NCBI GenBank assembly: GCA_002269645.1
Contig: NIVC01001802.1
Span: 1-64,000 of the forward strand
Reading direction: 5' to 3'
Origin: Macrostomum lignano
Lineage: Eukaryota
DNA: 64,000 nt
A model generated the notes under the pieces. The model was not told where the DNA came from and made no database searches. It saw nothing but the letters and a program-made list of their open reading frames with translations. Every line of letters starts with the position of its first letter. Position 1 is the stretch's first letter. Positions 2,708 to 42,807 of this stretch are shown here, piece after piece. The position numbers were made by a program, and so were the translations under genes.

Positions 2708-2787
2708 AAACATAAAACACCTTTACGAAAATAAAATATAATCTTAAATCTTAAATAAAATATAATGAGTCTTTGTTTCTTTTCTTT

Positions 2788-4495: not shown

Positions 4496-4579
4496 TTCTC
4501 CATTTGAGGTTCTATAGAAGAGGTTCTATCTTCTATAGAACCTCTCAAATATCATTTCTCTACTATTATTGTTTAGACT

Positions 4580-9900: not shown

Positions 9901-10299
9901 GGTGAAGAGACCATGATATCCCATGCAACCGATGATACGGCCGCACAGCTTCGGCAGTACCTAGGCTAAATGCTACTGCATGCAATGCGCGCATAAGCCA
10001 AATGTACCGCTGGACGCAATTAATAAAGAAGCTCATTTAAGCAAATAGACAAAAATAATAGATTTCACAGATCAATGCCGCTCATTATTCGCGCCTGCCT
10101 GTATCAACTGGTCAGATTTACGCCTGTCTTTGGATTCCGAGTAGCGGGTATTTCTAATACTGTCTCAATAGGCTCTCGCGCCTAATGAGAATTCGTAGGC
10201 GTAGTTGCAAATGCTTAGATGCTTCTCAGTAACTGTCACTCTTCTCGCGTCTTATCCTATCCTCTCTGCAGACTCTTTTGGACTTGTAAGGTCCCTCTA

Positions 10300-10490
10300 G
10301 CCTTGATCTAGGGACTCTACTAGCACTGATCTAGGGACTCTACTAGCACTGATCTAGGGACTCTACTAGCACTGATCTAGGGACTCTACTAGCACTGATC
10401 TAGGGACTCTACTAGCACTGATCTAGGGACTCTACTAGCACTGATCTAGGGACTCTACTAGCACTGATCTAGGGACTCTACTAGCACTGA
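10300..10490. repeat. 23-bp tandem repeat, about 8 copies
   Basis: Unit tagcactgatctagggactctac. Confidence 0.95.
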
Positions 10491-10513
10491 TTCTAGCAGT
10501 GGGAAAAGAATAT

Positions 10514-10832
10514 GGACCAGAGGCGCCAGCACCAGAGGCGCCAGCACCAGAGGCGCCAGCACCAGAGGCGCCAGCACCAGAGGCGCCAGCACCAGAGGCG
10601 CCAGCACCAGAGGCGCCAGCACCAGAGGCGCCAGCACCAGAGGCGCCAGCACCAGAGGCGCCAGCACCAGAGGCGCCAGCACCAGAGGCGCCAGCACCAG
10701 AGGCGCCAGCACCAGAGGCGCCAGCACCAGAGGCGCCAGCACCAGAGGCACCAGCACCAGAGGCGCCAGCACCAGAGGCGCCAGCACCAGAGGCGCCAGC
10801 ACCAGAGGCGCCAGCACCAGAGGCGCCAGCCC
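10514..10832. repeat. 15-bp tandem repeat, about 21 copies
   Basis: Unit accagaggcgccagc. Confidence 0.95.
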
Positions 10833-11238
10833 CAGCTCAATCAATCAGTTGGGATCGTCTTCAATATGATTAATGCAAGCACGATTAGAGTTTGTGTGTT
10901 CAAAACACATCAGAGTCCATGAAAATGCTGCTTTTTCCAGAGAGATAAAGCAGACCTCAATAATTACTTTAGTTTTATTTAAGAAGAACAAGTTGGCGAG
11001 AAAATGTCTGTAGCTAACTGGCGTGGAAATGGCTACATAGGAAATCATCATCATGAAACGTGTACAATAAATTAATATTTCAGAGGAAACTTCGAGTAAG
11101 CCACCTAAAAATTTCAACAGTCTAACAAATAGTCAATTAATTTTTTGATGCTGTCAGGCTGGCCTTACTGACACACAGAAGAGGCAGGTGCGGTACGAGT
11201 ACAAACATTAGGTTAGGCATTGGAGGTAATTGAGGACA

Positions 11239-11452
11239 GGGACTCGGGGGCAAACTGGGGTCCGAAAATTGCATCAGAGCCAGACAGAACTAGATGTTTT
11301 TGAGAAGCTGACTCGGGGGCAAACTGGAGTCCGAAAATTGCATCAGAGCCAGACAGAACTAGATGTTTTTGAGAAGCTGACTCGGGGGCAAACTGGAGTC
11401 CGAAAATTGCATCAGAGCCAGACAGAACTAGATGTTTTTGAGAAGCTGACTC
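11239..11452. repeat. 69-bp tandem repeat, 3 copies
   Basis: Unit gactcgggggcaaactggagtccg...tttttgagaagct. Confidence 0.9.
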
Positions 11453-16000: not shown

Positions 16001-17696
16001 AGAGATGCTGTACGCAGGAACGCCACTCAAACACGCGTGCACACAGGATGAAATTCTAACTGTCACGCATGTGTCTGTGAAGTGTCGGCACGCATGTGTC
16101 TGTGAAGTGTCGGCACGCATGTGTCTGTGAAGTGTCGGCACGCATGTGTCTGTGAAGTGTCGGCCGGCATGTGTCTGTGAAGTGTCGGCACGCATGTGTC
16201 TGTGAAGTGTCGGCACGCATGTGTCTGTGAAGTGTCGGCCGGCATGTGTCTGTGAAGTGTCGGCACGCATGTGTCTGTGAAGTGTCGGCACGCATGTGTC
16301 TGTGAAGTGTCGGCACGCATGTGTCTGTGAAGTGTCGGCACGCATGTGTCTGTGAAGTGTCGGCACGCATGTGTCTGTGAAGTGTCGGCCGGCATGTGTC
16401 TGTGAAGTGTCGGCACGCATGTGTCTGTGAAGTGTCGGCCGGCATGTGTCTGTGAAGTGTCGGCACGCATGGGTCTGTGAAGTGTCGGCCGGCATGTGTC
16501 TGTGAAGTGTCGGCACGCATGTGTCTGTGAAGTGTCGGCCGGCATGTGTGGAAATCAGAGAAAAGACCCCTCAGCTAATTTCTCAGAACAAGGCCAAATT
16601 AATGCGGCCGCACACAGAATCGAACCAAGGCCCAAGGGTCGTGGCGCGCGAGCCGCTGAGCTGCTCAGAGAAACTGCTCGCTGGCACAGAAACCGAACCC
16701 GGAACATCCGGAACTCGATCGTCATTAATGCAGACATGCTTTACTCAGCAGTGACGTGACACCAAAAAGCTTCCTTTCCCAACACTCACATAGACGGCCA
16801 GCTCAGAGCTGTTCGGAGGCTGCTCGAACCAGCGGCACAGCGGGTAGTCGATGAGCAGAGAGCAGTTGCTGGAGTTGAATACAATCCCGCGACAGTCCGG
16901 CACCTCGCTGCACTTGTCAACGCAGCCAACGAGCGATGAGACAGCCGACTGGTGCTGAAGAAAGGCGGCGATAATCTTCACCGAGTTGCTGGGAATATGG
17001 ACCCGCTTGTGCGTCACGTTCCGGTCCACCAGGTACGCTGTGAAATATGTATTTTGGGGATGGATTTGATGGGCAATAAGGTGAGAAAAGCTAGCGTCAG
17101 CGTTGAAACTGGCTGGATTGCATCAACCTTTCCATGCTTATGCTAGAACCCATCGCTTAAACAGACCACAGGTGTAAGACTAGGTTTTCATCGAAAAACT
17201 CACCAAGTAGGCGTGCGGCGTCGGTGCCTCTGAGCAGCTGCTGCTCAAAGTCGCCAGCCTTCCAGATCTGCACACCGTCCTCAGGCCGAATCTCCCTGGC
17301 AACAAAGCTGCTGCTGCTCAAGCCCGGCTCGCTCGCATTGTAGATGACGAGCACCTGGCATTCGAGGATCGCGGCTTTTTTGACGACTGCGACAGCGCAG
17401 GACGTTGCCCAGCACTTCCACAGGCAGAGAACATCTGATCGAACACCCGTATCGTTGAGCAGCTCGCTGCTCACGTAGCTTCCGATGCCGATGAAGCCGC
17501 TGGTCACCCGATCGTAGAGACCTCCGGTGAGGGCGCTGAGGTCTGCGGCGGAGACCACAGCTGAAAGGGGTGTGAGTGAGCAGTGAGTGAGTAGAGTCTC
17601 TCCGTCAAGGTGGCACCATTTTCATGCAGACTCACCCGTGAGCAGCTGGCACAGAAGCAGCTGCAGCGGCTCGGACCGCTTGGCTGTCAGCTTCAT
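13032..17696 (-). CDS. Secreted SP-PAN/apple-PAN/apple-FReD protein (420 codons; exons 17696-17636, 17560-17204, 17037-16790, 15028-14896, 13492-13032) with an in-frame TAA at 14938-14936
   Basis: All junctions are GT-AG with compatible phases (1,1,0,1). N-terminus MKLTAKRSEPLQLLLCQLLT. Two C-x3-C-x(4-5)-C...C modules (CLWKCWATSC; CVDKCSEVPDC). FReD motifs SFDRLWAE*KTGFG and GLEWLH...FRVDL. Confidence 0.7.
13729..14597. mobile_element. Non-autonomous hAT-like element
   Basis: TIR CAGTGTTGGGCAC / GTGCCCAACACTG; imperfect 8-bp TSD aatatggg/aatattgg; many subterminal cgttaa/ttaacg motifs. Confidence 0.8.
15283..15948. repeat. Foldback element: degenerate ~260-300-bp inverted arms (15283-15540 and 15645-15948)
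   Basis: Matching pairs include caaggacgact/agtcgtccttg, ggaggcagatccagtgttc/gaacactggatctgcctcc and ggcacagctc/gagctgtgcc. Confidence 0.8.
16064..16548. repeat. 25-bp minisatellite, about 19 copies
   Basis: Unit gcatgtgtctgtgaagtgtcggcac. Confidence 0.95.
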
Positions 17697-20079
17697 CGCA
17701 GGCAGCTGAGTTGCTGGGCAGATTTTACAGTCAGCGATCGGCTCTGCTGATGCGAGATGATCCGCGATGGAGCTCAGCTCCTGATGGGGCTCCTGAAATA
17801 TGGGATTCTGCTGATATCTAATATATGATAGCTGATAAATACAAGCTGGTTGCCAAGCGCCTGACAAACCGCCCCTCGCCTCTCTTTCCCGGCGGCCCCG
17901 CAGTGCCCAGTTATGGAGCACAATGGCCCAATCAGGGAGCTAGGTACCGAGCCACTGTGCGCTCATGCCGAGTCCCTTTGCTATGCAGACAGTTGGCCAC
18001 CCAGTGGTCGCTCCCCATCTCCCTCCCCACCTCCCACTTTCCCTGTCTCTCTTGCCCGCATCAAATGACCCGCTAGCAACAGCATGGCAACCAGCAGCAG
18101 TCCCCGAGCCAGAGAAGCGCTGCCCCATCACATTAATAATGCACCCACCTGGCCTTCTGCTCACTGAACGAGAATTCTGCATTCAATTAATGATGGAGCC
18201 CCGACCAGGTGCTGCTGGGAGGCGGGTCCGGAATCCATAAAAATTTGCAAACCCCTGCCCGCATTGAACGGCAGCAAAAGTGGATTAAAAAACTGATGCG
18301 AGCTTTGTGAAGATGAGCTCTGTTGACTTTGACTGCCGTCATTTGCCTGTGCGGCTCTGCCAAGTATTGACAGCGCGCTCACATTTACGGAGGGCTGGGC
18401 ACGCCTGTGTAGCATGGGACAGACCAGGCTTACAACCCCTCTGTTCCGGTGCAGGAATTGCAGGAGAAATTACTCCAAGCTTACTCAGGGACTCACAAGT
18501 CGACCCGGGGGTTCCCGTCACGCATGTGTTCAGGGCAGCTCTAGGACTGCTGGACTGATTGGGCTCTGGTGGCGGAAATCCATCCATTAGCCTTGGCTTC
18601 TGTCTTGTCCGTATTGGGTTCGGCTTCTACCTGTAAGTGAACCTGTGCGTATCTCTGGCCACGGCTTTGAGGAACAGATTTTGCCCTCTGACTTCTTAAC
18701 ATGATATGCGGCCAATCCGCAGGCTCCAGAGACAGCCTCCTTGTCTCTCTTAAAGGCCCAGTGCAGCACCACAATGATGGATCTTTGGCTTTTGGCCAGG
18801 GAGTTTCTCTGTTGCTGGCGGTCGGGCTGGCAAAGGCTTGGGCCACCCCCGGTCGCTATCTTTTGGCTGCTGTTGGGTTTGGGAATATGGCCCAGCAGCT
18901 TCTCACCTTAGTCCCCATTTGCTTTGCAGCGACAAATGGAGTAACAATGTATAAACGCCGCTTCCCTTGATGTTGCTGGAACCCCCACCGAGGATGGTAC
19001 CGCGGCTCAACCGGACATTTGTAGCACCGGAACATCCGTCTCTTCTCACGCCAACAACCTTGTCGGACAACACGGTAGCGGGCGCTACATCTCTAAAAAG
19101 AGGCTCATAGCATCGCCCGCTTCTAGGATTTCCGCCGGCGCAAAGCCGAAGCCTACATGCGAAAGGGGGGCTCCGCGCGTCAGCTGGATCCTCCCTCGGC
19201 GGGACCTCTGATCGTGAGGAAACTTTGGAGAGATCCAAAGCAAAAGCTTTTGGCCAAACCCATTAAGCCGAATAACCCACAAACCCACCTTAGAAGAGGA
19301 CGAGCGTCGAAGACCAGGCAGTTCACATCCAACCTGCCGACCGCCAGTCTGGGCGGTAGCTTCTCGAGATACTGTTCAAAGCTTTCGAATGTTGTGCGGA
19401 GTTGAGCGACCCCAGACACATCGGCACCGTGCTTTGATTCCGGCTCGCAGCACCATTAACAACGCCGACGAACTAGTGTTGCCAACTAATCTGGAACTAC
19501 CAGCAAATTGCGTCGTGGTCCCATGAGAACCGGAGAAGCGGAAACGGGCGAGTGGGAGATCTGCCGAGCCGAAACGCCGAATAAAAAGGAACCCCTGCGC
19601 GTCGCGATCCCTCTGAGGACCCGTCAGGCGCAAAGCCGCGAAATCTGCAGCAGCAGGCGGACGTGGGAACGGTCAAAAACCCGCCCGGATGTTTTCTAAG
19701 CGTGGCTGTTTGCGGTCTGCACGAACGGAAGCAGAAAATACAGCACATGTACCAGGGCATGCTACGAGTACTATATGGTCAACGTACAAGCGATACGGCA
19801 ATCAGATTCTGGCCAGCAGTTAAAACTAGACCGGTTCAGCTGGCCTAGGAATTGATGTTCAAGCATACTGCAAGCACGCCTAATGCCAGGCGGCTATCAG
19901 AACTGCACAGAAAAATTGTGCAGGCAAACCCAAGCAAGATGCGATCGATATGCTTGGCTGCGGCAAAGCGAATATAACGCCATCAGAGGTGGAAGGTATA
20001 GCTATAAAAGTAAAAGGTCGCCAAGAAACTTCGTCTGGGATATTTTTGCTTGCGCTTGAACGGCAATACTAAAACACAC

Positions 20080-22315
20080 ATGAGTTCCGCAGCCCAAGTG
20101 GCAGTGGCTGCACTGCTTCTAATTTTCTGCTCGCTGGTAGCTGCTCAGCTTCCTCAGAGAGCTTCAACTGCCTCATCCAAGCCGCGCTTTGTGACCCAGC
20201 TCAACGTGAGCGGCTGTCCGCTGGTTGTATACGACTCGGGAGAGCATGCACTGGAGATCGAGCCTATCATGTGCGTCACTGGTGCCATCGAAAAGCAGCC
20301 TTTGAAACTCGATCTGATTTCGCAGATTTTGTACATCCGAGTCCCCATGCTTCTATGGGATGCCGACATGCTTGCCCAAGCTGGGCTGCAGCTGCGAAAC
20401 GTTTCTCTAAAGCCCGTTCGCTTCGCTACTGTCACTAATATAGGAGCTGTGGCAACCAAGTCTAGCGTTATTGGGTTCGAGTGGAGTTCAAATCACTCGG
20501 CTGGTGTTCTGAAAATAGGAATAAATAACACAGAAGCGGCTCTGATGATGATGACGTGAGTGTATTTAGAGTCCTTTTTGGTAGAAAAATATTTTAGGCA
20601 ATTTTTGACAAAACCAATATTAAACTAATCAATTTCTAGACGAGAAACGTCGCCTACCGACGCCTTAGACCAGGTGCAACTCAAGGTCACCATTTTATCA
20701 AATCGCAAATTTCGACAAGTCACTCTGCGCCCAGTGGCGCGAAACCGCGGATTCACGGAACTGTCTCTCTTAAGTGCCAGATACGAATTGGAAACTTGCT
20801 CAGACATTAAATTTGTACTTTTAATGCACCACAGAAACCGTCAAGTTCGAGTATTTCAGCGACTCGATTCTAGGGGTGCCTATTATATTGAGCCTCTACT
20901 CTGGAGCGTCGATAAGTCAACATACGGACCAGTTGAATATGACTACGGCAGAAACATGCACTACCTGAAGCTGGATCTCGTGCTGCAAGATGAGGCCACA
21001 CTCGATGCCGTGAGGACACAGCTGGCCGAATTGTCGCCTCGCTCAGTCGAGTTTATGCGGCTGTGGGCTGTTGAGAGATCGGTGAGCTCTTTGTTGAGCT
21101 CTCGGTTCGAGGTCGGTCCGCTGATGGTGTCGGCAGACTGGAAGTTCGCTCAGCTGCGGCTGTACTGCAGGAGTATAAAACAGTGCACCAATCTGAAGTA
21201 ATTATTGCCTCTATAGTATTATGTCCGGATTTTTTAGTATTTTAAAACAAAAAACCATAAAACTACAACACATTTTAGGTCCAATGTAATGACAAAAGAT
21301 CCATTTGCTTTTTGGTATCATATCAATTGGCATCCAACGTCAATTGTTAATTCGGATTGCCTCTTCAAGTCGGACTCGACCGTCTCCTCTGGGAAGACGG
21401 AAAGCTCCACCGACGCCATCAGTTGCAGCCGCTCCGCAAGCTGCGCCTATCTTCGCAGTCTTGCTCGGAGTGGAGACCTGAGTTTTGGCAAGCTAAAAAG
21501 GCTCGCAGATGGCAGATGGTTTTTCATTATACAGCAGAGAGTCTCGGCCGAGGAAAGTTTTCGGCGCACTCTGGCGTCGTACATCCGCGGATTCGGGAAT
21601 GAAAACAACTTCTGGATCGGTACGATGTCTCAACATTAAAAAGTTTTTCTTTATTGTTTCTGTATGATAAAATCTGAGTTGCTTTTGAGAATCTTTTGTC
21701 AGACTTATCTTGGCTTAGCCGCGGCAAGAGTCCCAGGGGCTACCAGTGTAAAAATGAAACTACACGCGAAATTCAGCGTTCAAATATTGTCAGTGCTTTC
21801 AATTCTTCTAAATACTATTAAACATTTCAAATCGCACCAGCCCATAAAAAGCAAATCAAATATTAACAAACGTGAATTCGCCCTTCATTGACATTGCAGG
21901 TCTGAACAGAATTGCCTCGCTTACCGACGGCGGCGCCACCCTTCGAGTGGAGATGAAGCTGTGGAACGGCACCGAGTGGTACGCGGAGTACTCGAACTTT
22001 ACAGTTGAAGGCGTCGGCTCCATGTATCGGATGACGTACCGTGAGATGCTGAGGGACAAGTCTAACGCCAAACACGATGCAATGCAGTACCACAAAGGCA
22101 TGCAGTTTTCTACCATCAATGTGGACAATGACAGAGACCGTAGGAAGTCCTGCTCCAATGCATATGGCGGAGGTGGCTGGTGGTTCAATAGCTGCTACCA
22201 TTTCAATCCAAATGGGCTGTTCCCGACCAGCCCGACAATAAACCTGAAGTACATGCTGTGGCACTCTGACAGATGGATGTCCATTCGGCTTGTGCGGCTG
22301 ATGGTGCAGTTATGA
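20080..22315 (+). CDS. FReD gene A: signal peptide, two copies of an unassigned domain, linker, fibrinogen C-terminal domain (about 596 aa; exons 20080-20555, 20640-21197, 21279-21619, 21900-22315)
   Basis: Phases 2,2,1 join without stops. FReD motifs IIQQRVS...F.RTLASYIRGFGNENNFWIG|LNRI...LRVEM...FST.NVDND...GGWWFNSCYHFNPNG. Confidence 0.85.
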
Positions 22316-22551
22316 TCTGATGCTTAACACGACACGAACAAGTTCAAATCGGGACATGTCGATATGATTAAACTTCCGCGCAAACTTGACGCAATAAAAT
22401 AAAGGAAGCGATTGTTTAATCGCTGTTCTCAGATTTACCGTTTTCAAAACAGAACTGCAATATTAAGATTAAGCTGTTTCCTGTTTTTCACTTACATTAA
22501 AAAGTTTATTTGTATCTTTGTTTAGGTTTTCAACGCAAGGATGCGTTAAAC

Positions 22552-22750
22552 CAGGGGGTGGCAAAAATTTTTATCTCAAGGGCCAGATAAAAATCCAGCT
22601 CATTGCTGCGCACGAGATGAGCGAGAAAAGAGAAGAGAATGGGGAAAGTGAAGAAGAAAGAGATGACATATGACAGAAGAGAGAGGAGTGGGGAGAAAAG
22701 ACACAAATAAGAGGGCCGGATTGCTATCGTGAACTTTCAAAAAACCCCTG
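22552..22750. mobile_element. Degenerate hAT-like MITE
   Basis: CAGGGG...CCCCTG ends; flanks cgttaaac/tgttgaac match at 6/8 positions. Confidence 0.5.
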
Positions 22751-23386
22751 TGTTGAACAAACAGCTTTATAAAACTTGCAATTTTGATTAGAAGGTCATC
22801 AAGTCCAGAAAAATGCGTTTGTACATGTATATGAAGTAGTTTTGGAAATCGATGATTCCCACTTCGAGCGGAAAACTGGCTTCAAGCCCACAAATAGCCG
22901 GTGCAGATGCTTTCTGCAACTTGCAAGAGAAGCACGCGAGTAAACATCAGATACGGTGAGGAAGCCGCTACAGCTTTAGACGCTAAATTTGAAACGAACG
23001 AAGCTTTGCACCAAAATGAACTTGCGAATTGGAAAACATCATGTGACTCTAAGACGCACGTGCGCAACAAGCAGTGACAGACAAGGCAAGTCACAAATAA
23101 CCAATTCACCTAAGCAAACGGCTGAAAATATCAAATTTCAGTCCATTTTTTTGTATATTTGCCCTTAAATTTTACTCGTGAAAGTAGGTGTATCAGGCAA
23201 TTACGAAAACAGCAAAACTTATTTGACTAAGACTTGACAACACAATCTTGATCTGGCATTCGCTGGTATATAATTAGCACTATAAATTAAAAAATTTCAA
23301 CGGCAAGATATTATTTATTAGTAAATTTAGAAGACAACTATATTGTTCGAATAGCAGGCACAGAAACCTTGAGGAAAGGCACTTCA

Positions 23387-25442
23387 ATGAAAATGTCACT
23401 CAAAAATGCAGCACTGTCACTGCTGTACTTCTATATGGGAATCAGCGGCCAGGTCTCCCAGTGCGCTCCCGCTGCCTCTTCTCTACGGCTCCGCTTCGTG
23501 GCGCAGCTCAACGTGAACGGCTGCGCGCTGTTCGTGCACGACACGGGAGCGAGCGACGGTCCGCACTTGGCAGTCGAGCCGCTCATGTGCGTGATGCGAA
23601 GCTTAAAGTCTCTGAGTCCGAAAGTGGACCTAATCACGCAGCAGATGTACGTGAGCATTCCTGTGTTGATGACGGATGATGGGATGCTGGCAGAAGCTCA
23701 GCGTCAGCTGCAACATCTATCACCAAAGTCTGTGACCTTTGCGGCTGTGTCAGAAGTCAATGCTTCCACAGATGCTAACTCCACTGTTCGTTCTATTGCT
23801 TTTATCTGGAGTCCACATGAGTCCGTTGGAGATCTAAGAATCGAAACAGATATGGACAGAAGTGCATATGAGCTCTCGTAAGTTTTGAAAAATTGGGTTG
23901 GCTCATATTTACAAATCATTATAGTGAAGATTCGAACAAACCTGAACCATCCTGCTCAGATCAGAACTGCAGCTATCATCGGTCGAATCCCTTCAGCGAA
24001 TTCGCTTATCGGCGAAGCTTTTTCTCAACGGAACCTACCAGACCTACCAGTACCGAGTATCGACTCAAAATCACAGCTTCTTTGACCCCAGTGAGTACAG
24101 ATTAAGGTACAGTCCCCTGCCTTCATGTCGACAACTGAGATTCATTCGTTCCATCAGTCTGGAGAACTGCTCTGTTCGAGTGCACCAGAGACTCGACATC
24201 AAGGGCCACTTCCTTATCGAGCCTCTGCTGTGCCACAACATCTCCAGCTTGAGCAGCGAGTCAATCAGATATGACTTCAGCCGCGGCAAATATTATCTCA
24301 AGCTGAACCTTTTAGTGCAGGATGAAGCATCACTTCAGACTGTGAGAACTAAACTGGCTGATTTTTCGCCTCTCTCAGTGGAGTTCATGCGGCTGTGGAC
24401 TGCTGAGAGATCGGTGAGCTCTTCGTTGAGTGCCCGGTTCGAGGTCGGTCCGCTAATGGTGTCGGCAAACTGGAGGTCCGCTCAGCTGCGGCTGTACTGC
24501 TCGTCCTTAAACCAGTGTGGCGCTGCCAGGTTGGCGCTGCAGTTAAATGCAATTTTTTAGTCCATATTGAATGACAGGAAAATTGCCTCTTGTTTTAGAT
24601 TTTCTGCTCTGTCGGAGCCTGTTGACTTGTGGCGACATCTAAAATGGCGGACATCCTCTCTGGTGGCGAATCAGTGCTTATTGATGTCCCATAAGCATCT
24701 TTCGTCTTGGAGAATGAAAACGATTGGCAGTTCGCCTTCCTGCTCAACCTACAACTCCTGCCGCAATATTCCCAGCCTATTGCGATCCAAAATTGTTTCC
24801 TTCGAGACGTTTCGCAGTTTACCTGACGGCAGATGGTTCGTGACCATCCAGCAGAGGGTGAGTGGAAGCGTCAGCTTCCAGCGAACGTGGGCGGAATACG
24901 AGACTGGCTTTGGCCACGACACCGACTTTTGGATTGGTTCGTTTTTTGTTATTTTAGTAAATGTATCCATCCTGAAATTGTATAAGGCCTAAGCTGTAGT
25001 TCCAGTAGCTTTTGTTGCAATTTCAGGTCTATCTGCGATTAGTCTGCTAAGCACAGGTGGCGTCACCCTCAGAGTGGAAATGAGGCTGTGGAACGGCTCT
25101 GAGTTGCATGCGGAGTACGCGGGATTCCAGGTGGGCGACGCCAGCTCCAGGTACCGGATGACGTACCGAGAGATGCTGCCGGAGAGGTGCACCGTCAGCT
25201 GGGACGCCATGGAGCACAACAATCGGTCCCGGTTTTCCACCATGGACACAGACAACGACAGGCGCAGTGAGTCGTGCTCCGACGGCTACGGCAAAGGTGG
25301 CTGGTGGTTCAACAACTGCATGCACTTCAACCCAAACGGGATTTTTTCCACCCGTGAGACTTCGGACGATGCGTACATGTCTTGGTTTTCGCGTCGCCGG
25401 TGGCTGGCACTTCGCCAAGTACGACTGCTGCTCCAGATTTGA
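23387..25442 (+). CDS. FReD gene B, paralogue of A (about 604 aa; exons 23387-23877, 23960-24529, 24599-24936, 25027-25442)
   Basis: Same exon phases as A. The acceptor at 23959 gives a frame that aligns residue-for-residue with gene C (LSAKLFLNG...[11 protein letters not shown]). FReD: [25 protein letters not shown]...[15 protein letters not shown]. Confidence 0.85.
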
Positions 25443-26149
25443 CAGGAAAAGAAACAAATGAATTCTCACAAATGCTCAGCAATAATGTCTAAATATCTCT
25501 TAATCTGAAGGCATCTAATCTAATCTGCATTGTTAATATATAAAATTTTTCTATGATTAACTGAGTAATCGTCATCTCTTTTTTGCCTGATTCAAAATAG
25601 CAAATTTAATTGGTCATTGTACTTTAAGAAGTCTTTTAAAAGTCTTTTTTTGATAAATAGAAATTGATTAAATAAAATTGAATAATGTCTATACTCGAGT
25701 TGCACTACTGCTGCGTCCTGTGCTAACAATTGAGTGAGGCTTTTTCAATTACCGATCTGAAAAGCGTCAAACTCGTCCAAATGCTTAGAAGACTCAGTCT
25801 GATAAAGTCTGCTTGAGCACAGAGAGACAATTAAGAGCCATGTCTGTTGCATCACATAGATTTTGTGAATCGCGTCTTTAAGTATAAAGATCTGTAGCCT
25901 TTTGAGTCTATTGGATTTAGAAAGTCCGATAATTGAATAAAGATAATTCTGAGTTATTTTGTCAACAAAGTTCTCATATCAAATTAGTTAGCCATATAGT
26001 AAATAGATTTTACAATATTTAGCCTTGTTTTTATCCTCTGACAATGAATTGTAGTTTGATATACGTCACTGTCAGTACATGCAGGTAGCAGTTAGGTTCG
26101 AAGCTGTTGTTGAATTGCGAAGCTAAGGGGAACCTCAAAGTCTCTGCTA

Positions 26150-26280
26150 GTACTTTAGGCACTTTAAGCACTGTAAGCACTGTAAGCACTGTAAGCACTG
26201 GAAGCACTGTAAGCACTGGAAGCACTGTAAGCACTGGAAGCACTGTAAGCACTGTAAACACTGTAAGCACTGTAAACAGC
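26150..26280. repeat. 9-bp tandem repeat (agcactgta/agcactgga)
   Basis: Visible tandem units. Confidence 0.9.
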
Positions 26281-26684
26281 ACTCCTTCACCTTTTATCAA
26301 CTATAGCTCGACCCGGCCTCCAGGGTTTAGTCTCGAGACTTCCGAAGCTCACTTGATAGTATAAAAATAACCCCTGAACTTGATCGCGCTGAAATTCTGC
26401 ATTAGCATCCTGTATCTGAATAGGCAATTAGAAGCTCTTGCAGATTAAAAATAGATATGTTTTTAAAGCGTCTCTTCCTAATTATAGAGCATTTATTTAT
26501 TCAAAACTTTCTATAGTGTTCCCGTTTGTCTCGCATTTCTAAATTGCAGACTATTATAAATAAAAGAATGCTAACAGCAAAGATGAAGTGCAATTCAACC
26601 TATTTTAAAACGCGTTTGTAAAATTCTACACATCTTTAAACACAAAGCAGATTGTAGAGTCTTCAATTCTCACAAACAAAGATA

Positions 26685-29600
26685 ATGGAGCAACTAAATT
26701 TGCTTTTCAAAACTTTGCTGGCTCTGCTGCTCTGCTCGCTGGCAGCCGGCCAGGTCTCCCAGTGCGCTCCCGCTGACTCTCCGCGGCTCCGCTTCGTGGC
26801 GCAGCTCAGCGTGAACGGCTGCGCGCTGTTCGTGCACGACACGGGAGCGAGCGACGGTCCGCACTTGGCAGTCGAGCCGCTCATGTGCGTGACGGACAGC
26901 CTGAGAGGCATTGTTCCCCGATTCGACTTCATCACCCAGCAGATGTACTTCAGCGTTCCTGTATTGATGCGGGACGCTGGGATGCTCGCAGAGGCTCAGC
27001 GTCAACTGCGGCATCTTTCACCGAGGTCTGTGAGCTTCGCCACGGTGACCAACATCAGCGTCTCAGCCGACACCCGCTCATCGGTTCGGGCTTTGGGCGT
27101 CCTGTGGACTCCGGATGAGCCAGTCGCCACTCTCAGATTGAAAAACATCAGCTCGGAGGACAATTCAAGTCGAGTTCCAAAGACATGGTTAATTAAAAAC
27201 ATTCTTCCAATGCAATGCGTGTACAGTCAGAAGAACAGTGATGGCCTTAGAAATTCACCCCGAGAAGCTCTTGAAAAAGTGAAGCTAACAGCTTCAATCA
27301 TTGCAAACGGCTCCTGCCACGATGTTCAGAGTCGCCTCCGGCTGCAGAATGACATCCTCCTCGACTCAGAGATAAACGCACAAAGATTCTCACCCCTGAT
27401 GACATGCCGACAGCTGAAATTCAGCCGCACCGTCAATCTCGAGAACTGCTCTGCCCGAGTGCACCAGAGACTCGACATGAAGGGCCACTTCCTCATCGAG
27501 CCTCTGCTGTGCCACAACATCTCCAGCTTGAGCAGCGAGTCAGTCAGGTATGACTACAGCCGAGACATGCACTACCTGAAGCTGGATCTGGTACTGCAAG
27601 ATGAGGCCACACGCGATGATGTGAGGACTCAGTTGGCCGACTTGTCGCCTCTCTCGGTCGATTTCATGCGGCTGTGGACTGCTGAGAGATCGGTGAGCTC
27701 TTCGTTGAGTGCTCGGTTCGAGGTCGGTCCGCTGATGGTGTCGGCAGACTGGAAATCAGCTCAGCTGCGGCTGCTCTGCACTACATCATTGCAGTGCCGA
27801 GAACTCAGGTTTGATGATATTATGACATTGAAATGAAGAAATTTGAAATTTGAAATTTCGGTTTCGGTTTTTGCGAATGCGTTATTAGTATATAATTTCT
27901 GAGCGCTCTTTAGCAGCAGTTTACTATTCTGCCTGCTCGCATGACATAAAAATACTGTCGTCATTTTGCACAAAATGTGTGATTATTTTATTCGATGACG
28001 CAGTGAACGCTCCTAAAGTTTGCAAGTTTATCAAGCATCCAAAATTCAAATTGGTCCTTTCAGCTTCTGAATTAGTTATGCTATCGAAAAACATCAAGTG
28101 AGTCCTTCAGTTTAGGGAGTCGTATTCTTCTGTAATACGTTTTTTATGAGCTAGGAGTGTAGTCACCCAACAGTTTCCATCACAAGATCAATAGCAAGAA
28201 GTTGGAAGCATATGCAATAAGTCCTGTACAACCAAAACAGTATTGGAGGTGCTGCTGCTAACGCTGCAGGCAACTATCCAACACCACTGAGACAGGTGGG
28301 AATTCACTGTTTCATCAACTTCTAGCAGCTGGCTGATTCTGTCCCACAGTTTCTTATGCTTTGGATTATATTCACACAAAGGATCGCCCTCTTACGCAAG
28401 GCATTTATGACATTGCAAGACTTTTGCCATTTTAGCTCTTTGATTTTCCATAATGCTCATATGTCTTTTGACCATTTCTTACGTCGATTCAAAGTTTTAT
28501 TAGCAAAATATTGTTCAACTTCAGGTCTGTGCTTCTTTTGGAACCTGTTGATATCTGGCGACACGTGCAGTGGCGCGTGACATCGCTGGTTGCTGAGCAG
28601 TGCCTCTTCGAGTCCAGCCGAATCACTTCATCATGGAGAATGAAACCACTTGGGAGTGCAGCCAGCTGCTCCAGCCTCAGTTCCCGGGCCGAGCTGTGCA
28701 CAGCCGACTTTGCTAAGCGAGTTAAGCGAGACGGTCGTTGTTTCACAATAATTCAGCAGCGACTCACCGATAAAGTGAGTTTTCAGCGAAACTGGACTGA
28801 GTACGAGACTGGCTTCGGTGACGATATTGACTTCTGGATCGGTGAGTGGTGTCGGGCCAGTTGTTTAGCGTGAGTCGAAAAACTTTAAGCAAAGCCTTGC
28901 GAAAAATTTTAGAAGTTCTTATTATGTCAGTAGGTCGCGTGTTAGACGAGACCGATGGTCAGTTATAGGAGACCGAAGAGATTTCTGAATTTGTGACCGT
29001 CCGCAGTATTCAATTTTCATTTGGTCCTTTGGTGGACGAATTGATAGATAGATGAGTAAGTGAATGAATGGATGAATGAGTTGATCAGTAGCGCAAACAG
29101 AAATTTTTTGAGGGTGGGATTCTGGAGGGTAAAGTCCCCGGGGGGGGGGCGGAGGGGTGGCTCTGTTTTTTGCGAAAATTCGCTTGGTCCCCCCTTCGAT
29201 TTTTTTGGGTCTCCGCCTAAAGGGCCCCCCTGGTTGCGCCCCTGGAGTTGATGAATTGATTGGTGGATAGGTGGGTCCAGGGTCCAGGGTGGACGCATGG
29301 TATAGATATGTGAGTATACTGTTGAAAGAGTCACGAGAGAGAACTAGGGGAGGGTGCTCAACGGATCAAGTAGCTAGTCAATCTCTTCACTGCTAAGTGA
29401 ATCGCTTAGAAAGTGGGGAACTCCCAGCACACAGCTACATGTATTGTCTTGTATTTCGAGTATGTCGGATGCTTAGGGGGGCCGTAGCCCAGCGGTAGCG
29501 CAGCTGCTCTGGTGTGCCAGCGACCCAGGCTCGATTCCAAGTGCAGTCACATTAATTTGGGGCTGAATTGGAATCTCGGCTTGGCTCTGCTCGTGCAATT

Positions 29601-30336
29601 AACGGCCTTGAGAGCCAACCCCCCAAGGCGCAGTGAAGTGTACATGCCTAACGATAATATAAAGTTAGGGCCGCTGTACACTCCTGTGTGAGTGTGTGCC
29701 TGCGTACGTATCCGCGCGCTTGTGTGCCTGCTCAGGGGAGTCGGCGGAATGGGCAGTAATGCCTCTCGCCGGTTGTGTGCCTATGTCGCCTAAAGTGCGC
29801 CAGGGTGCACACAACCCCCCTGCCTCTAATAAAAAAAAATGTCGGATGCTTTTCGGGCCGCCACATCACCAACTAATACAACTGCAGGCCTGCAGAAGAT
29901 CCACAGTCTGAGTGGCGCAACGCCGCGCCTGTTTCGAATGGAAGCTCGCAACCATCAGAACGGCAAGCTGTACGTGTGCGAGTACTCTCACTTCTCGGTT
30001 GGCAGCGCCAGCACGCGGTACAGGCTGAGTGTCAGCGGTTACCTGCCCGGCAGCTCCAACACCTCTAAGGACGCATTCTCCTACAACAACAATCTGACCT
30101 TCTCAACAATGGACTCGGGGTCGAATTCTCGCTGCTCAAGACAGAATAGTAACGCTGGATGGTGGTACGACAGCTGCACCTACGTCAATCCAAACGGCTA
30201 CTTTAACTTGTCGGAGATCGGCAGCAGATGGAACAGTTCGAGAAATATGCAGTGGCTTTACGCAGCTGACTATGTGGGGGGATTCACGATCAGACCAATG
30301 CTGAGAAGTATTCGTCTAATGTTGGAAATTAGCTGA
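26685..30336 (+). CDS. FReD gene C (about 612-629 aa; exons 26685-27808 with a possible in-frame intron from 27188, 28525-28841, 29888-30336)
   Basis: SP MEQLNLLFKTLLALLLCSLAAG; same two N-terminal domains; FTIIQQRLTDKVSFQRNWTEYETGFGDDIDFWIG|LQKIHSL...FSTMD...AGWWYDSCTYVNPNG. Confidence 0.85.
29086..29244. mobile_element. hAT-like MITE in gene C last intron
   Basis: Perfect 8-bp TSD GAGTTGAT; TIRs CAGTAGCGCAAACAG versus CAGGGGCGCAACCAG. Confidence 0.85.
29476..29838 (+). mobile_element. tRNA-headed SINE, family 1
   Basis: Head ggggggccgtagcccagcggtagcgc...ggctcgattcc, AATAAA plus poly(A), 13-bp TSD ATGTCGGATGCTT. Confidence 0.9.
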
Positions 30337-31213: not shown

Positions 31214-33488
31214 CCCCGTCTTCACGGATGGCATGCTGGGCGTACCATATTATATACTAGAAAGAAATATTTCTTGCTTAACGTGTCTATGGCACAATCT
31301 TTTTTTCTGACTTCTCAGTTTTCTACATCCCCACAACTCACGGATGGCACGCCCTGCGTGCCATCATAGATCGAAAGACTTTTTTGTTCTTGTTATTCCA
31401 TGTTTAGTGTCCGAGGAAATTTTCTATTTTAAGAATTCGAAATTCTAAGTAAACAGTCTAGCAAAATACTATAACAATAGAAGCACTGGGATTCGGATAA
31501 CTGGGATTTTGAGACACATGGGACTTCGACGGACTCGGAATTATACGAACTGGGACTTGTACGAACTATTCAAACAAGCTAAGGAGGTAAAGAAGCTTAG
31601 CTAATTTAACTAGCACTTCAACATAAAACAAGCGAGAAGTAGCTTACTCTCTGACTTGTAGCAATAGAAAATTGACAAGATAATTCGGCAGAACGGGATC
31701 GATTTGGATGTCAGGAATTCAGATGGTTACAGAGTAACAGTAAGTCGACTGTACAATCAGTTCCCCGCGGCAGTGTGCCAGCTCTGAAAGCAAGGAGCTG
31801 CGCAAAGTCCAGGCTCTCCAGGGCAAGCATCGCACACGTAGACAGTTCGCTTGACCGAGCCGTTTCCATAGCAGAATCTGCACCGCTTAGTCGGTCTCAT
31901 ATTGGCCTCTGTCGGTGGTAGTTTGGATGGGGTTTGCAGCGAGGCAGCTCGACGCTTCGATGTGTTCTGTCGCTTGCCCCGACCCGTCTGCTCCATCAGA
32001 AGGCGGATCGTAGCCTCCAAGAAGTCTAAGAACTTGATGCAGTTGCCAGAATGGCAGTAACAAATCCAAGCATTGCGGACCAACTGAAGCAAAATATGAA
32101 ACCCGAGCTTCTGGTGCCACCTGTGCGTCCTTCTTCCTGCACTGTAGGGTTGTAGCGCTGCGTCAAGGCGATCGGCGCCTCCCATACTCTTGTTGTACTG
32201 CAGCAATGAGTTGGGCTTCAAAACTGTCTCCACTACGCCGCCTCGAATTACTCGCCTCACCTCCGTGCTTCCAGCGACGCCGTGGGTGTCCAAAAGGTAA
32301 ACAGTTTTGCGACCACTGCCTTTCTGTCAACGAGCTTGACGGCAACAACATCGCCTCGGCGCATGTGAGAGTGACTTATGGGTTGCAGTGCCAGCACCTT
32401 TAGCTCGTTGGGGATGCCTCGGTCGACTCTCACGGTTCCTGTCAGCATGGTATTACGTTCGAGCAGAAACTGAGCTAGGCGAAGCGACGTGAACCAGCTG
32501 TCACAGTAGATCCGGTAGCCCAAGCCCAGCAAGTCCTTGCTTAGCTCGACAACAATCTTTTCACTGAAAGATAAATTCCCGCAGTTCACTCCTTCTCCAA
32601 ACCTGTCGTTGTCCTGCTTCACAGCATGCACACGGAAGTTCCACAGAAATCCGGTGGAAGCCTCTGTGAGACAGTAGACCTTTATGCCGAACCTGGCGCG
32701 CTTGTTGGGCATGAACTGTCGGAAAATGAGTCTGCCTTAGTACATGACCAACTCTTCATCTACTGAAACGTCCTGATTCGGGCAGTAGTTGGCTTGGCAA
32801 ATACCACGCGCAATGTCTAAAAATGGCCTGATTTTCTTCAGGGAATCCTGGTGATTATTTACTGCGGTGCAGTCGTAGAATCGGAGGAATGACAAGAGCT
32901 GAATGAACCGATCCCTTCCGAGGCAATGCTCTTTTTGAAAATATTCACCACCGTAGAAATCGCCAGTCGACCAATACATGTGCAATTCGGGCTTCTTCAC
33001 TAGACCCATGTACAGGACAATGGCGAGACATTTCCTCACTTCGTTGTCGGTGCATTGTCTCCAAGATGATAGTAAGGGGGAAGAGGTCCATCAGCCTCAG
33101 TTGCAATGTTTTGGAGCTCGAAATCAGCTCGAGCATTGGTCCAAAATCGAATGGCAGACACCAGATCAGAGGTAATAAAGTGCTGGAGGAAGAATTTGAT
33201 CCGAGCCATTGTGTTTTCCGGCGCTTGGGCTAATAGATCCGGGTTCAGAACGGGCACTCCGAGGAATTCTGGCGCATCCCGGAGACGCGAGTCTTCACCC
33301 TCCTGAACGAAATTCCATCCATTTTCAATCAAAGCTTCTTCTACCTGAGAGCCTTCCACGTCACTCTGGCCATCTTCTTCATCCACCTCGCCATCAATGC
33401 TTGCGTACTCGCTGGCGCTGTTATCACTGGTCAAAGCCGGTGAGTCGTCAAGAAAGTCAACGGCATCCTCATGAAAATTGCTAGCCAT
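31214..33488 (-). mobile_element. Decayed piggyBac transposon (PGBD4-like DDD transposase; ORF pieces 33488-33036, 33039-32257 with an in-frame stop, 32293-31757)
   Basis: VSVDEELV, MPNKRARFGIKVYCL, IYCDSWFTS, YNKSMGGADRLD and a C-terminal CRFC...CDACP...CAAPCFQSWH. Two frameshifts plus TAA at 32739-32737. Candidate 3' terminus CCCCGTCTTCACGGATGGCA at 31214; 5' TIR not found. Confidence 0.9.
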
Positions 33489-34367: not shown

Positions 34368-37300
34368 TCAATGCTGTGGGAAGATCTCACGGATTAGGGG
34401 CAGCACCTGGGGCCGCTCCTTGGTTACCTGAAGGCACGCGTCAATACCCTGTCTCTGACGCTCAGTCAGCGGGTCACTGTGGTACACCGTCACCCACGGG
34501 CTGCCTGCAGTAAGGAAATTGTTCATTGAGTTTGGTCATAAAGGGAAGTGCAAGACGTGCAGAATTACCATCTTGATTGTTAAAGTAAATTTATTTATTT
34601 ACGATTTTCGATTTACGATTTAGAAATTTAACGATTCTAAAGGTACATTTATTGTTGTGAAAGTACATTCTAGAATGTAAAAGTACATTATCGATTGTGA
34701 AAGTACATTATCGATTGTGAAAGTACATTCTCGATTGTGAAAAAAGTACAGTCTCGATTGTGAAAGTATATTCTCGATTGCGAAAGTACATTCTCGATTG
34801 TGAAAGTACATTCTCGATTGTGAAAGTACATTCTCGATTGTGAAAGTACATTCTCGATTGTGAAAAAAGTACAGTCTCGATTGTGAAAGTATATTCTCGA
34901 TTGCGAAAGTACATTCTCGATTGTGAAAGTACATTCTCGATTGTGAAAGTACATTCTCGATTTCAAAATTTACTCGCACTTCCCGAAGTATTTTTTTTAA
35001 AAATTAGAAAAATTCTTCGTAAATTGATTCAGCGGCTTTAATGAAATTGATTTTTACCTACACTGACTCGGTCTAAAATTTGGAAGCTTCCTACTACAGT
35101 TTAGCTCAGACAAAAACGTACCCTGTTTAACAGCGTCACCCTTGACAACCAGCAGCTCGAGTCCGGTTGAATGATCCAGCTTGCCACCGAGACGCTCCGG
35201 CCTGCTGAGCTGATGGCAGATCTTGGCCAGAGACAGGGCGTCAATGTCCGACACGAAACCTGCAATCAAAGGGCATTCGTAGCATGTAGCATTTATCCTA
35301 GCATGTGGTTATGAGGCAGAGTGCCTCAGCGGTAAACGCGTCTTACTCCTGAATCACGACGACTCACAGTCATGGCCTCCCATGCCGCTGTTCACCCTGT
35401 GTGAGCGTGTGCCGTCATAAGGCATGAATGCTTTTGCCTCTTCGAGTTCTGAATGTTGTTTCATTTGTGGTATCAAGTTATTTTGCCTTTAAAGTCCACC
35501 TTGTGAACACCAATAACTCTTGTAGTAGGCTTCATTCGAAAGCAATCCTACGAACTATATGTAGGGCCTCCTGGGGTGAACTTAGTAAACAATGTCTTTG
35601 GTGATTAAAATTCATTTGAAGGAGCCTTGAGCGTGCATGAGCATGAAGTGACTCGTTTTAGCATCAAGAGTGTAGCCAGGATCTATCACTGGGGAGGGGA
35701 AAGGCGCCATTATAAATTTGAGGTGGCGCTACACCTTTTGGCGACATCGTCCCGCAACGATTTTTTTTTATTAGAGGCAGGGGGGTTGTGTGCACCCTGG
35801 CGCACTTTAGGCGACATTGTCACACAACCGGCGAGAGGCATTACTGCCCATTCCGCCGACTCCCCTGAGCAGGCATGCAAGCGCGCGGATACGTTACGCA
35901 GACACACACTCACACAGGAGTGTACAGCGGCCCTAACTTTATCAATTGTTAGGCATGTACACTTCACTGCGCCTTGGGGGGTGGCTCTCAAGGCCGTTAA
36001 TTGCACAAGCGAGCCAAGCCGAAATCCCAATTCAGCCCCAAATTAATGTGGCTGCACTTGGAATCGAGCCTGGGTCGCGGCACACCAGAGCAGCTGCGCT
36101 ACCGCTGGGCTACGGCCCCCCTCCCGCAACGATTAGGTCATGACAATTCTGTCCATTCCGCCACCCCATGAGCACATAATGTACAAAGGCACGCGTTCAT
36201 ACACACGCTCACTAAGGGTGTACATCGGCTCTGACTTTCTAATCATCAGGCATGTTTTGTAGACTCTCTGCGCCTTGGGGCCGGCCTTCGTGACTGTGAA
36301 ACCGCACAACAACCTCCAGGCCAATGATGGTCCAAAAGTCCTTAAGTTGTACTTTTACTATATATTTTACGGTTATCCTGATCACCAACCTGTTGATGAA
36401 CTACTCAAGGCGCAGCTGGATCACTCTTGACAAATTGCTAAACTTAGTGACTTAGCGGATTTGAGCTCCCCTGAGTACAATGCACTCACCGGAAGCGGGA
36501 CTGCTCAGCTGAGTAACAGACAGCGGCTCCCGGCCCATCCGGCTCAGGTACTCCTGCACGCTGAACTGGCCCGGCTCGCACAGATTGTCGGCCAGCGCCT
36601 CGGAGACGCCCTGGTTCACCAGGATGCGCCGCATCGCCTTCAGCGCCGAGCCGTCGCTCCAAGAGTTGCGCACCGCCGCAGCGCCGGCCTCGTCCGTTGC
36701 GACTTTGCCGGTCAGGCGCAGCAGGCAGCCGCTTTGGCGCGCCACCAGCTCGCGCAGGCCGGCCGAGGCCGCGTCGCCTCCATTCAGCACCTGCAGAGCT
36801 TCGGCCACCTCGACGGCGTTGCCGATGCAGCGGGCGAGCGGCCGCTCCATCTCGGTGATGAACACTATCACTTTCATGCCGTAGCCGCGTCCGGTTCGCT
36901 CCTTGGGCGGTTGGATGAGAGAGTTATTTCAGTGTAAAACAGTTCATGCTCACAAGTGAACTGCCAAAGGGTAGGAAGTCTGTCCACTGACAATTTTTTT
37001 GCGCCGTCACGGATGTCGAACGATCGTATTGTTAAAAAGATTTGAGGTTAACTTTTTGGCAAGCATATTAGTTGCCATCAGTCGTTCAGGCTGCAAATGG
37101 ACGAGAACTTCAACAGACTCAAAATCGTTGCTCAAAGGCACACCTTTTGGGAGGAATCGTTGACGACCTTGTGCAGCCTTACTAATGAGAGACAAAATCC
37201 GCAGTGCAATTATTGTACGTGTTCCACCCAAACTACATGTAACGATTGACGCAAATATGATCTCACAATGGACTCGGCCAGGATCTGAGCCTCCTCAAAA

Positions 37301-38262
37301 GTGGTCATGAAGGCGGCGCGGCCGAACTTCACGTCCATCACCAGGGCGGAGATGCCCTCGGCGGCCTTCTTGCTCAGGATTGAGCTGGTGATGAGCGGCA
37401 CGGACCGGATGGTGGCGGTCTCCGACCTGGCCGCGTACAGCACGCGGTCGGCGGGCACCATCGCCTCGGTCTGGCCGGCGATGAAGCCACCAACGTCCGA
37501 CATGACGGCGCCGCGCATCTGCTCGGCTGTCAGGCTGGCGTTGAAGCCGGGAATCGACTCCATCTTGTCGATGGTGCCACCAGTATGGCCGAGCGACCGG
37601 CCGGAGATCATCGGCAGCTTGAGGCCGAGGGCGGTCAGTGATGCCACCATCGGTGGGCTGACCATGTCGCCGACGCCTCCGGTGCTGTGCTTGTCCACCA
37701 CCTGCCGGGGGCATTCAAATTGGCAGGTAGCGTGTTAGCGGAGTAAAAATAATGTAACTCTATAGTCATAATTCATGTCCATTCAAAATCACCGGAACGG
37801 AACCCCTAAGTTTAAAAGAAATATTTTAATTTTATATCAATTTTACAATCGTCCTATCGTTTTGTTTTACAAGCGTATTTCGCATTTGGTGAACAAGAAT
37901 GAATATGAGGAGTACATGTAGCTACCATAAATAACAGAAAGCGCAATTGAGCTTTTGGACTGCAGTGATTTTCATACACTCGAGTAGTTCAGGGTCAGAA
38001 CATCAGACAGAAAACGCACCAATGGTCTCAGGCTGTCAGGCCAGGACAGAGTCTCCCCCGAAGCAGTCATGGCCGAGGTGAGTTGAACAATCTCCTCCGC
38101 GTCCATGCCTTTGGTGAAGATGAGCATGAGCACTGCTCCGATTTGCTGTCCGGAGAGCCGGCCTGAGCTCACCAGCCGCACAAGCAGCTTCACGTCCTCT
38201 TCACTCCATCGCTCTCCGCTCAGCTTCTTCTCAAGCAGTTCGCTGAAATCCAACAATAGCAT
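34368..38262 (-). CDS. TYMP: Thymidine phosphorylase (about 454 aa; exons 38262-38020, 37701-37267, 36901-36490, 35259-35122, 34504-34368)
   Basis: [72 protein letters not shown]. Phases 0,0,1,1 are consistent. Confidence 0.9.
34672..34962. repeat. 20-22-bp intronic minisatellite (cgattgtgaaagtacattct)
   Basis: Tandem units within TYMP intron 4. Confidence 0.9.
35763..36121 (-). mobile_element. tRNA-headed SINE, family 1 (second copy)
   Basis: Reverse complement of 29476-29838; 13-bp TSD TCCCGCAACGATT at 35750-35762 and 36122-36134. Confidence 0.9.
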
Positions 38263-42660: not shown

Positions 42661-42807
42661 GAAACACTTATTGACAGACTCATTACTATTAATAGGAACC
42701 TGTCAAACCACACAGTCAAACACCAAGCTATTACAATGAAGCAAAACAAAAATGCTAACTATCATATATCATATCTTTACAACAGTTGCCACAGGCTGCC
42801 AGTCAAC

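Follow-up and report, generated by a model that had tools for sequence, protein, structure and literature searches.

We report a cluster of three tandem genes, here called A, B and C, on the plus strand of a 64-kb stretch of the genome of Macrostomum lignano, a free-living flatworm and transgenic model organism (assembly GCA_002269645.1, contig NIVC01001802.1, positions 1 to 64,000; hereafter the window). Spanning positions 20080-30336 and making up exactly the three members of their family within the window (tblastn), these genes encode signal-peptide-bearing multidomain proteins that have no transmembrane segment and that join a C-terminal fibrinogen-related domain (FReD) to a novel duplicated module, termed X. 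Invertebrate FReD lectins are a classic example of how innate recognition is assembled through domain shuffling, and the FReD partners known to us so far are immunoglobulin superfamily (IgSF) domains, collagen, coiled coils and EGF. On balance we lean towards a reading in which A-C are tandem secreted lectins, each with a FReD head on an X stalk, most likely serving to recognise non-self, be it microbes, food or surface glycans. With the exception of C, the genes were already public as hypothetical proteins; new here are the definition of X, its proposed disulfide scheme, its use by two lectin families, its mosaic evolution and gene C itself.

All three proteins share one layout, in which a signal peptide is followed by two X copies (X1 and X2), a short cysteine-containing linker and the C-terminal FReD. 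This arrangement, proposed in an initial annotation of the stretch, was confirmed by splice models and Pfam searches, and every motif quoted there was recovered (RFVxQLNVxGC, EPxMCV, YLKLDLVLQDEA, RFEVGP and AQLRLYC..QC). The gene models are as follows:

20080-22315, + strand: gene A (BOX15_Mlig015699g2), 596 aa; exons 20080-20555, 20640-21197, 21279-21619 and 21900-22315
20080-20145, + strand: signal peptide of A, residues 1-22, MSSAAQVAVAALLLIFCSLVAA with cleavage before Q; the sole strongly hydrophobic 19-mer in A (Kyte-Doolittle 2.4)
23387-25442, + strand: gene B (BOX15_Mlig006328g2), 604 aa; exons 23387-23877, 23960-24529, 24599-24936 and 25027-25442
26685-30336, + strand: gene C, new model, 629 aa; exons 26685-27808, 28525-28841 and 29888-30336

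Introns of the three genes are of the GT-AG type, with conserved positions and phases (2, 2, 1). Gene C, with three exons, is without the first intron of A and B, so that X1 and most of X2 lie in a single 1124-nt exon; its reading frames are open and its GT-AG splice sites fall in the phases seen in A and B. A 39-nt intron within C exon 1 (GT...AG, phase 2) is conceivable, and the exon was kept unspliced there because both paralogs on contig NIVC01000136.1 stay open across the same region. Signal peptides were judged by eye and by a hydropathy scan rather than with a dedicated predictor, the cleavage site of A being set by inspection. Predicted secretion of A-C is read from the N-terminal hydrophobic segment, the only one in each protein (strongest in A and C, weaker in B), and the same scan returned no transmembrane segment in A, B or C. 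Each protein carries 6-11 N-x-S/T sites and, after the leader, 10, 14 or 17 cysteines (17 in C); linkers measure 15-30 residues, that of A being a Ser/Thr-rich segment of 15 aa before the FReD.

The M. lignano annotation was derived from RNA-seq data together with a de novo transcriptome (StringTie/TACO, TBONE, TransDecoder; PMC5730564). Our models of A and B agree with PAA63927.1 and PAA63928.1, respectively, at every residue, and the same coordinates are annotated on NIVC01001802.1; both genes are therefore transcribed and spliced as modelled, which answers for these two a question that the initial annotation had raised. As to reading frames, its description of A, B and C as three intact genes is borne out; transcript support extends to A and B only, and C is unannotated.

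The heads are identified by profile and motif as genuine FReDs. PF00147 (Fibrinogen_C) scored 113, 123 and 107 bits in A, B and C, respectively (cut-off 22), with no further Pfam family in any of the three, and the FReD of A matched 68 FReD chains in the PDB at E < 1e-5, the best being fibrinogen-420 alphaEC (4e-22) and ficolin-3 (4e-20), with ANGPTL2 and tenascin-R as further close solved relatives. The heads lie at:

21424-22312, + strand: FReD of A, residues 394-596, spans intron 3; PF00147 E 2.3e-32, residues 423-594
24741-25439, + strand: FReD of B, residues 402-604, with MDTDNDR; PF00147 E 1.7e-35
28667-30333, + strand: FReD of C, residues 423-629, spans a 1046-nt intron, with MDSGSNS; PF00147 E 1.5e-30

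The P-subdomain cysteine pair around GGWW, followed by N-x-N-G, is present in A (SCSNAYGGGGWWFNSCYHFNPNG), in B and in C (RCSRQNSNAGWWYDSCTYVNPNG). The calcium-binding D-x-D-x-D stretch, which we take to correspond to the positions of fibrinogen gamma D318 and D320, follows FST and reads as canonical in B (MDTDND) and near-canonical in A (INVDND, Asn replacing the first Asp). Two cysteines lie upstream (SCSRSASC in A), where an N-terminal A-subdomain with its own disulfide would be expected, but the usual second cysteine (V-x-C-D-M) is missing in A and B. The FReD of C is the most divergent of the three, its last exon being 32-36% identical to that of A (tblastn).

Extent, cysteines and predicted fold of domain X

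X1 and X2 are related in BLASTP (E 7e-5) and in hhalign profile-profile comparison (probability 97%, E 5e-10), which identify them as copies of one domain, and an iterated hidden Markov model (HMM) of the family matches two X copies in each of A, B and C with E from 1e-36 to 1e-61. The duplicated N-terminal domain of the initial annotation thereby stood, while its size of ~125 aa gave way to ~170 residues, as delimited by the HMM and by an alignment of 29 non-redundant repeats (mean column identity 24%); the stretch first placed between the two copies consists of linker and of the C-terminal third of X1. The six copies are:

20182-20787, + strand: X1 of A, residues 35-208, spans intron 1; without Cys 1, 4, 5 and 6; HMM envelope 35-177, E 1e-36
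20788-21378, + strand: X2 of A, residues 209-378, spans intron 2; without Cys 2 and Cys 3; HMM envelope 215-366, E 9e-54
23462-24113, + strand: X1 of B, residues 26-215, spans intron 1; HMM envelope 35-184, E 2e-50
24114-24695, + strand: X2 of B, residues 216-386, all six Cys, the modelled sequence; HMM envelope 223-374, E 4e-58
26763-27392, + strand: X1 of C, residues 27-236; HMM envelope 35-168, E 4e-47
27393-28621, + strand: X2 of C, residues 237-407, spans a 716-nt intron; HMM envelope 244-395, E 1e-61

The signature of the family, whose HMM both copies in A, B and C match, comprises h-h-E-P-h-h-C, an S-V-x-F strand and, ahead of a helix, L-R-L-x-C-x(5,6)-C, with the Glu-Pro pair at least 90% conserved over all 29 divergent repeats. 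A canonical X carries six cysteines, of which Cys2 and Cys3 occur together in 21 repeats, are both absent from 8 and never occur singly (n = 29); Cys4/Cys5 and Cys1/Cys6 covary likewise, barring alignment shifts. This joint presence and absence points to disulfides 1-6, 2-3 and 4-5, of which 4-5 would be gone in X1 of A, B and C and 2-3 in X2 of A.

An AlphaFold2 model of X2 of B, built on the 29-repeat alignment, reached a pLDDT of 95.1 and a pTM of 0.85 and shows a globular module of mixed beta and alpha content, with eleven strands and three main helices; in it, residue 5 bridges near the last strand (166-169), in agreement with a 1-6 disulfide. An earlier model of A residues 22-383 from an 8-sequence alignment (pLDDT 48.6) was excluded from the fold search. 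None of the 29 diverse X repeats matched Pfam (0/29), the X profile matched no PDB sequence, and Foldseek of the B X2 model against 350,542 PDB chains returned nothing better than E 0.067 and TM 0.23, even locally. X is thus an orphan at the level of Pfam and the PDB, as the initial annotation had supposed in assigning it to none of the known domains, and is a candidate for a new fold. Its exclusion of IgSF and collagen also held: A-C gave no Collagen match, no IgSF Pfam match was obtained at E <= 1 for A, B, C or the 29 X repeats, the X model contains helices, and no Ig-like PDB neighbour had a TM above 0.22. As for coiled coils, no long helical stalk is predicted, no dedicated predictor having been used.

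A BFVD search with the same model returned a sole structural neighbour, A0A7S7YF07 of Medusavirus stheno T3, which is 417 aa long and uncharacterised (Foldseek E 7e-4, probability 1.0, TM 0.58 over all 171 residues). The target is itself a predicted structure, identity is 13% with no sequence-level relationship, and common ancestry is not claimed. This likeness bears on the idea that X has diverged very far from an extracellular fold already known (SEA-type alpha/beta sandwiches or ferredoxin-like modules, for instance) and that its orphan status is an artefact of search sensitivity. A BFVD model at TM 0.58 implies that the X fold is not unique to flatworms, the partial order strand, helix, strands, helix, strand recalls, in our own reading, beta-alpha-beta-beta-alpha-beta sandwiches, and fold relatives of X were sought in the PDB and BFVD only. 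We nevertheless consider this explanation rather doubtful, given the Foldseek result over all PDB chains and the lack of any Pfam or PDB sequence signal from the 29 repeats and their profile.

Distribution of X and evolution of the X1/X2 cassette

Searched exhaustively with the HMM, 1.84 billion representative proteins yielded 13 X representatives, 11 of them M. lignano proteins; the remaining two come from a 4.8-kb transcript-like contig (run SRR30276812) and a JGI metagenome contig. X is confined to Macrostomum-type flatworms, which agrees with the lineage-specific family foreseen by the initial annotation; the resemblance of X2 to Daphnia and rotifer proteins that it suggested did not appear in this search at E <= 0.001. 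Nothing new came from a word-indexed search with the 29-repeat profile, whose only matches were two short members of the family, and none of 36 matches from a metagenome pattern scan (closer alignment) was confirmed by tblastn. On the contig of JGI metagenome 3300040801, which presumably derives from a relative of Macrostomum, positions 300-1444 hold X1- and X2-like segments with 27-34% identity to the A-C proteins.

X was found in three architectures, namely one X with a FReD (P0030), two X with a FReD, and six X with a C-type lectin domain (Lectin_C; P0025, P0035 and P0036). The six-X Lectin_C proteins are 1285-1462 aa long (1436-1462 aa for P0025, P0035 and P0036), and P0026 is N-terminally truncated with five and a half X. 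The six-X C-type lectins of M. lignano (BOX15_Mlig001890g2, Mlig001546g1, Mlig001894g2) and the single-X FReD protein Mlig010354 have X in common with A-C (HMM E 1e-28 to 1e-50 per repeat) and are likewise read as secreted with a C-terminal lectin head; they differ from A-C in that the head is Lectin_C or the X copy number is another. P0025, encoded at positions 199-4587 of the SRR30276812 contig, combines a signal peptide, a Ser/Thr/Pro-rich mucin-like N-terminal repeat region, six X and a C-type lectin domain. Its six-repeat array is co-linear with that of M. lignano P0035 at 49% identity, each repeat retaining its own cysteine pattern, and we read P0025 as an ortholog, from another Macrostomum species, of the M. 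lignano protein. As these per-repeat patterns are kept, the six-X arrays appear to be old and constrained.

Because X accompanies a FReD and, six-fold, a C-type lectin head, it would represent a lineage-specific lectin stalk module, and its pairing with two unrelated heads in 1, 2 and 6 copies points to a scaffold or accessory-binding module instead of an effector. The opposite arrangement, "recognition-plus-effector", in which X is the main functional unit (a second lectin, a lipid/toxin-like effector or an enzyme) and the head serves only to target it, would accord with the conservation of the Glu-Pro pair across all repeats, with a fold that is confidently predicted yet unlike any solved structure, and with the giant-virus protein of uncharacterised role as sole structural neighbour. 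We judge it quite improbable, and no observation here speaks for an effector activity of X: copy numbers of 1, 2 and 6 are typical of spacer or avidity modules, disulfide pairs are freely lost in individual repeats, X1 tolerates an unrelated segment of 30-50 residues and variable length, and searches of Pfam, PDB sequences and PDB folds matched X to no enzyme or toxin family.

Beyond the window, NIVC01001802.1 carries a fourth gene of the family on the same strand at 72378-75442 (BOX15_Mlig019144g2, 600 aa), ~42 kb downstream of C and separated from it by unrelated genes that include an ISWI-type SNF2 ATPase (57706-64000). The contig segment 62378-76087, in which it is situated, matches the window at 100% over 62378-64000. 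Two tandem paralogs occur on NIVC01000136.1 (excised-locus positions 10097-11245 and 22165-23292), and orthogroup OG0000014 (PMC7336406), which includes A, B and relatives, comprises 73 transcripts belonging to M. lignano, M. hystrix and M. spirale, with none from the deep-branching M. pusillum. Comparison of C with the two NIVC01000136.1 paralogs by synonymous divergence (dS) delimited one further feature:

27105-27440, + strand: fast-evolving cassette, C residues 141-252, in the X1-X2 exon

In this comparison dS was 0.04-0.09 over the first 120 codons, 1.0-1.2 over the central 120 and again 0.04-0.09 over the last 113, a contrast of more than ten-fold within one exon; the central cassette showed a ratio of non-synonymous to synonymous divergence (dN/dS) of 0.9 in the closest paralog pair. 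Within X1 the cassette takes in the replaced Cys4-Cys5/helix segment and the last strands; it also includes the linker and the beginning of X2, and the first intron of A and B is located inside the same region. In X1, unrelated sequence that varies in length has taken the place of a segment of 30-50 residues. Compared with intron 1 of A and B, the variable insert of C-type paralogs showed no similarity above shuffled controls, a result that neither supports nor excludes an exonised intron. Low-dS tracts are also seen between B and its neighbour C (columns 1-30 and 241-270 of the alignment). The mosaic of dS within one exon suggests gene conversion of frameworks around a fast-evolving cassette.

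Recognition, reproduction or decay

In the lectin reading, the FReD head would bind carbohydrate or acetyl-group ligands, probably in a calcium-dependent manner in A and B, and the X domains would form a stalk that spaces and presents it, while the cassette at the X1/X2 junction may give X a second, diversified surface. The family grows and changes through tandem and whole-locus duplication, probable framework gene conversion and gene loss, C being broken in the duplicate locus. X would take the part played by IgSF in the snail FREPs and CREPs. In FREPs of Biomphalaria glabrata, an interceding region joins one or two IgSF domains to a fibrinogen domain, and CREPs carry a C-type lectin head (PMC7588048). 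Snail FREPs/VIgLs and A-C are alike in their order of parts, in which a signal peptide precedes one or two N-terminal accessory domains in tandem and a linker leads to the C-terminal FReD; in both systems the same accessory domain is also joined to a C-type lectin head, and both comprise clustered multigene families with gene conversion and a variable region. They differ in the accessory domain itself, X in place of IgSF (no Pfam IgSF match), and in the linker, which in A-C spans 15-30 residues without a match to a Pfam coiled-coil family, no coiled-coil predictor having been run. For FREPs, moreover, somatic diversification and the binding of parasites are on record. As Platyhelminthes and Mollusca are different phyla, the resemblance would be convergent. 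By analogy, the FREP-like architecture shows A-C as working like FREPs, not as members of that family, and an immune role for A-C may be inferred on the same ground.

A second comparison is offered by the acetyl-group-binding FReD lectins (ficolins, tachylectin-5A and FIBCD1). The FReD of A is co-linear with ficolin-3 to the C-terminus, sharing the P-domain cysteine pair and GGWW, with NPNG for NLNG, and, read from sequence, the calcium-site Asp residues are retained in B and largely in A. Unlike ficolins, A-C have no Collagen Pfam match, no Gly-X-Y run and no long predicted helical stalk (no coiled-coil predictor used), the first ~40 FReD profile positions are divergent, and a shorter C-terminal loop connects NPNG to the last strand. 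A literature search on flatworm FReD architectures found nothing relevant, nor was any paper text found that names the A, B or C gene identifiers.

We regard as unlikely the further-reaching proposal that X is a new Macrostomum fold serving as a variable non-immunoglobulin lectin partner, and that it forms part of an independent, diversified pattern-recognition system convergent with FREPs and CREPs, with framework conversion and X1/X2 cassette diversity. To our knowledge, flatworm immunity is almost unexplored at the receptor level. Were these readings true, they would provide a new extracellular module, possibly a new fold, a second independent design of variable accessory domain plus lectin head outside molluscs, and a testable way into flatworm immunity.

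A number of observations weigh against recognition of non-self by intact secreted lectins. No collagen or IgSF match was obtained, and no long helical region appeared in the low-confidence model of A 22-383 (no coiled-coil predictor used), that would make the lectin multivalent; the Pfam profile match of the heads begins only at position 37-41 of 221, and the calcium-site stretch of C (MDSGSN) is degenerate, its second Asp being gone. The disulfide pairs of X are deduced from covariation and secondary-structure proximity, not from coordinates, and the fold comparison covered the PDB and BFVD only, not AlphaFold DB. Gene C has no annotation on NIVC01001802.1, and its model was not present in the protein collection searched. 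OG0000014 carries a mixture of expression labels ('Non-Specific|Tail|Testes'), and some of its members are up in worms kept in groups relative to isolated ones (PMC7336406). The state of the duplicate locus described below (loss of the middle exon of C, and ratios for A and B near 1) belongs with these points.

As expected for the partly duplicated M. lignano genome, a second copy of the whole A-B-C locus is found on NIVC01001149.1, 96-98.5% identical. One segment of the window is absent from it:

28516-29362, no strand assigned: 847-bp segment including C exon 2, absent from NIVC01001149.1; identified as a break in blastn co-linearity, with no N and the junction read directly

This deletion removes the 317-nt middle exon of C from the duplicate, whose C remnant (excised-locus positions 16680-19479) is annotated only as a 132-aa FReD fragment, and it represents a copy-specific gene loss. 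Between the two locus copies, the ratio of non-synonymous to synonymous differences (pN/pS) is ~1 for A and B, computed from only 12-15 differences, and 0.26 for C. Such data raise the possibility that part of the cluster is decaying, with C and perhaps others being non-functional duplicates in a recently duplicated, repeat-rich genome. We treat this as possible, if on the doubtful side. C is not annotated although the annotation is transcript-based, its exon 2 is lost in the duplicate, its cysteine number (17) is odd and its calcium site degenerate, and the pN/pS of A and B approaches 1; on the other hand, all C exons are open in the window with correct splice sites and phases, C itself has a pN/pS of 0.26, A and B are transcribed and correctly spliced, and the X fold and six-repeat arrays are kept between species.

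The mixed expression labels mean that a reproductive role for some copies also fits. A reproductive or adhesive family, with lectins released from prostate, testis-region or tail glands for a part in seminal fluid, sperm-egg contact or mucus/adhesion glycan binding and evolving fast under sexual selection, would explain the 'Tail' and 'Testes' positional labels of some members of the orthogroup holding A and B, as well as its 'OvI_up' social-sensitivity label (PMC7336406). Reproduction-related genes of Macrostomum evolve fast (PMC7336406), and a fast cassette together with gene turnover suits sexual conflict as well as immunity. Nevertheless, OG0000014 is also labelled 'Non-Specific', its final call is 'positional_mix', and the labels apply to the orthogroup and not to A or B individually; it carries no germline or neoblast FACS (fluorescence-activated cell sorting) label and no in situ hybridization annotation, and immune lectins are the best-known setting for FReD or C-type lectin heads combined with variable accessory domains (PMC7588048). 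We therefore hold a reproductive or adhesive function to be unlikely.

Surroundings of the cluster

The cluster is flanked by transposon remnants at 805-1221 (-), 3357-4265 (+), 31757-32712 (-) and 50810-52222 (+), among them two fragments of retroelement integrase (rve) and a DDE transposase of the piggyBac type with its zinc finger; two more open reading frames look retroelement-like by eye, with no Pfam match. Downstream of the cluster, exons resembling thymidine/pyrimidine-nucleoside phosphorylase lie at 36452-37701 on the minus strand (Pfam Glycos_transf_3, E 8e-28). Minisatellites are dense, with ~30 arrays in addition to a 9-bp x13 array between B and C (26159-26275); units measure 9-32 bp and some arrays exceed 1 kb, examples being 16064-16549, 40661-41512, 41991-42662, 60253-61558 and 62609-63998. 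The array at 60253-61558, situated between coding segments of the ISWI gene, is the source of the extreme skew in GC and AT at 60-62 kb.

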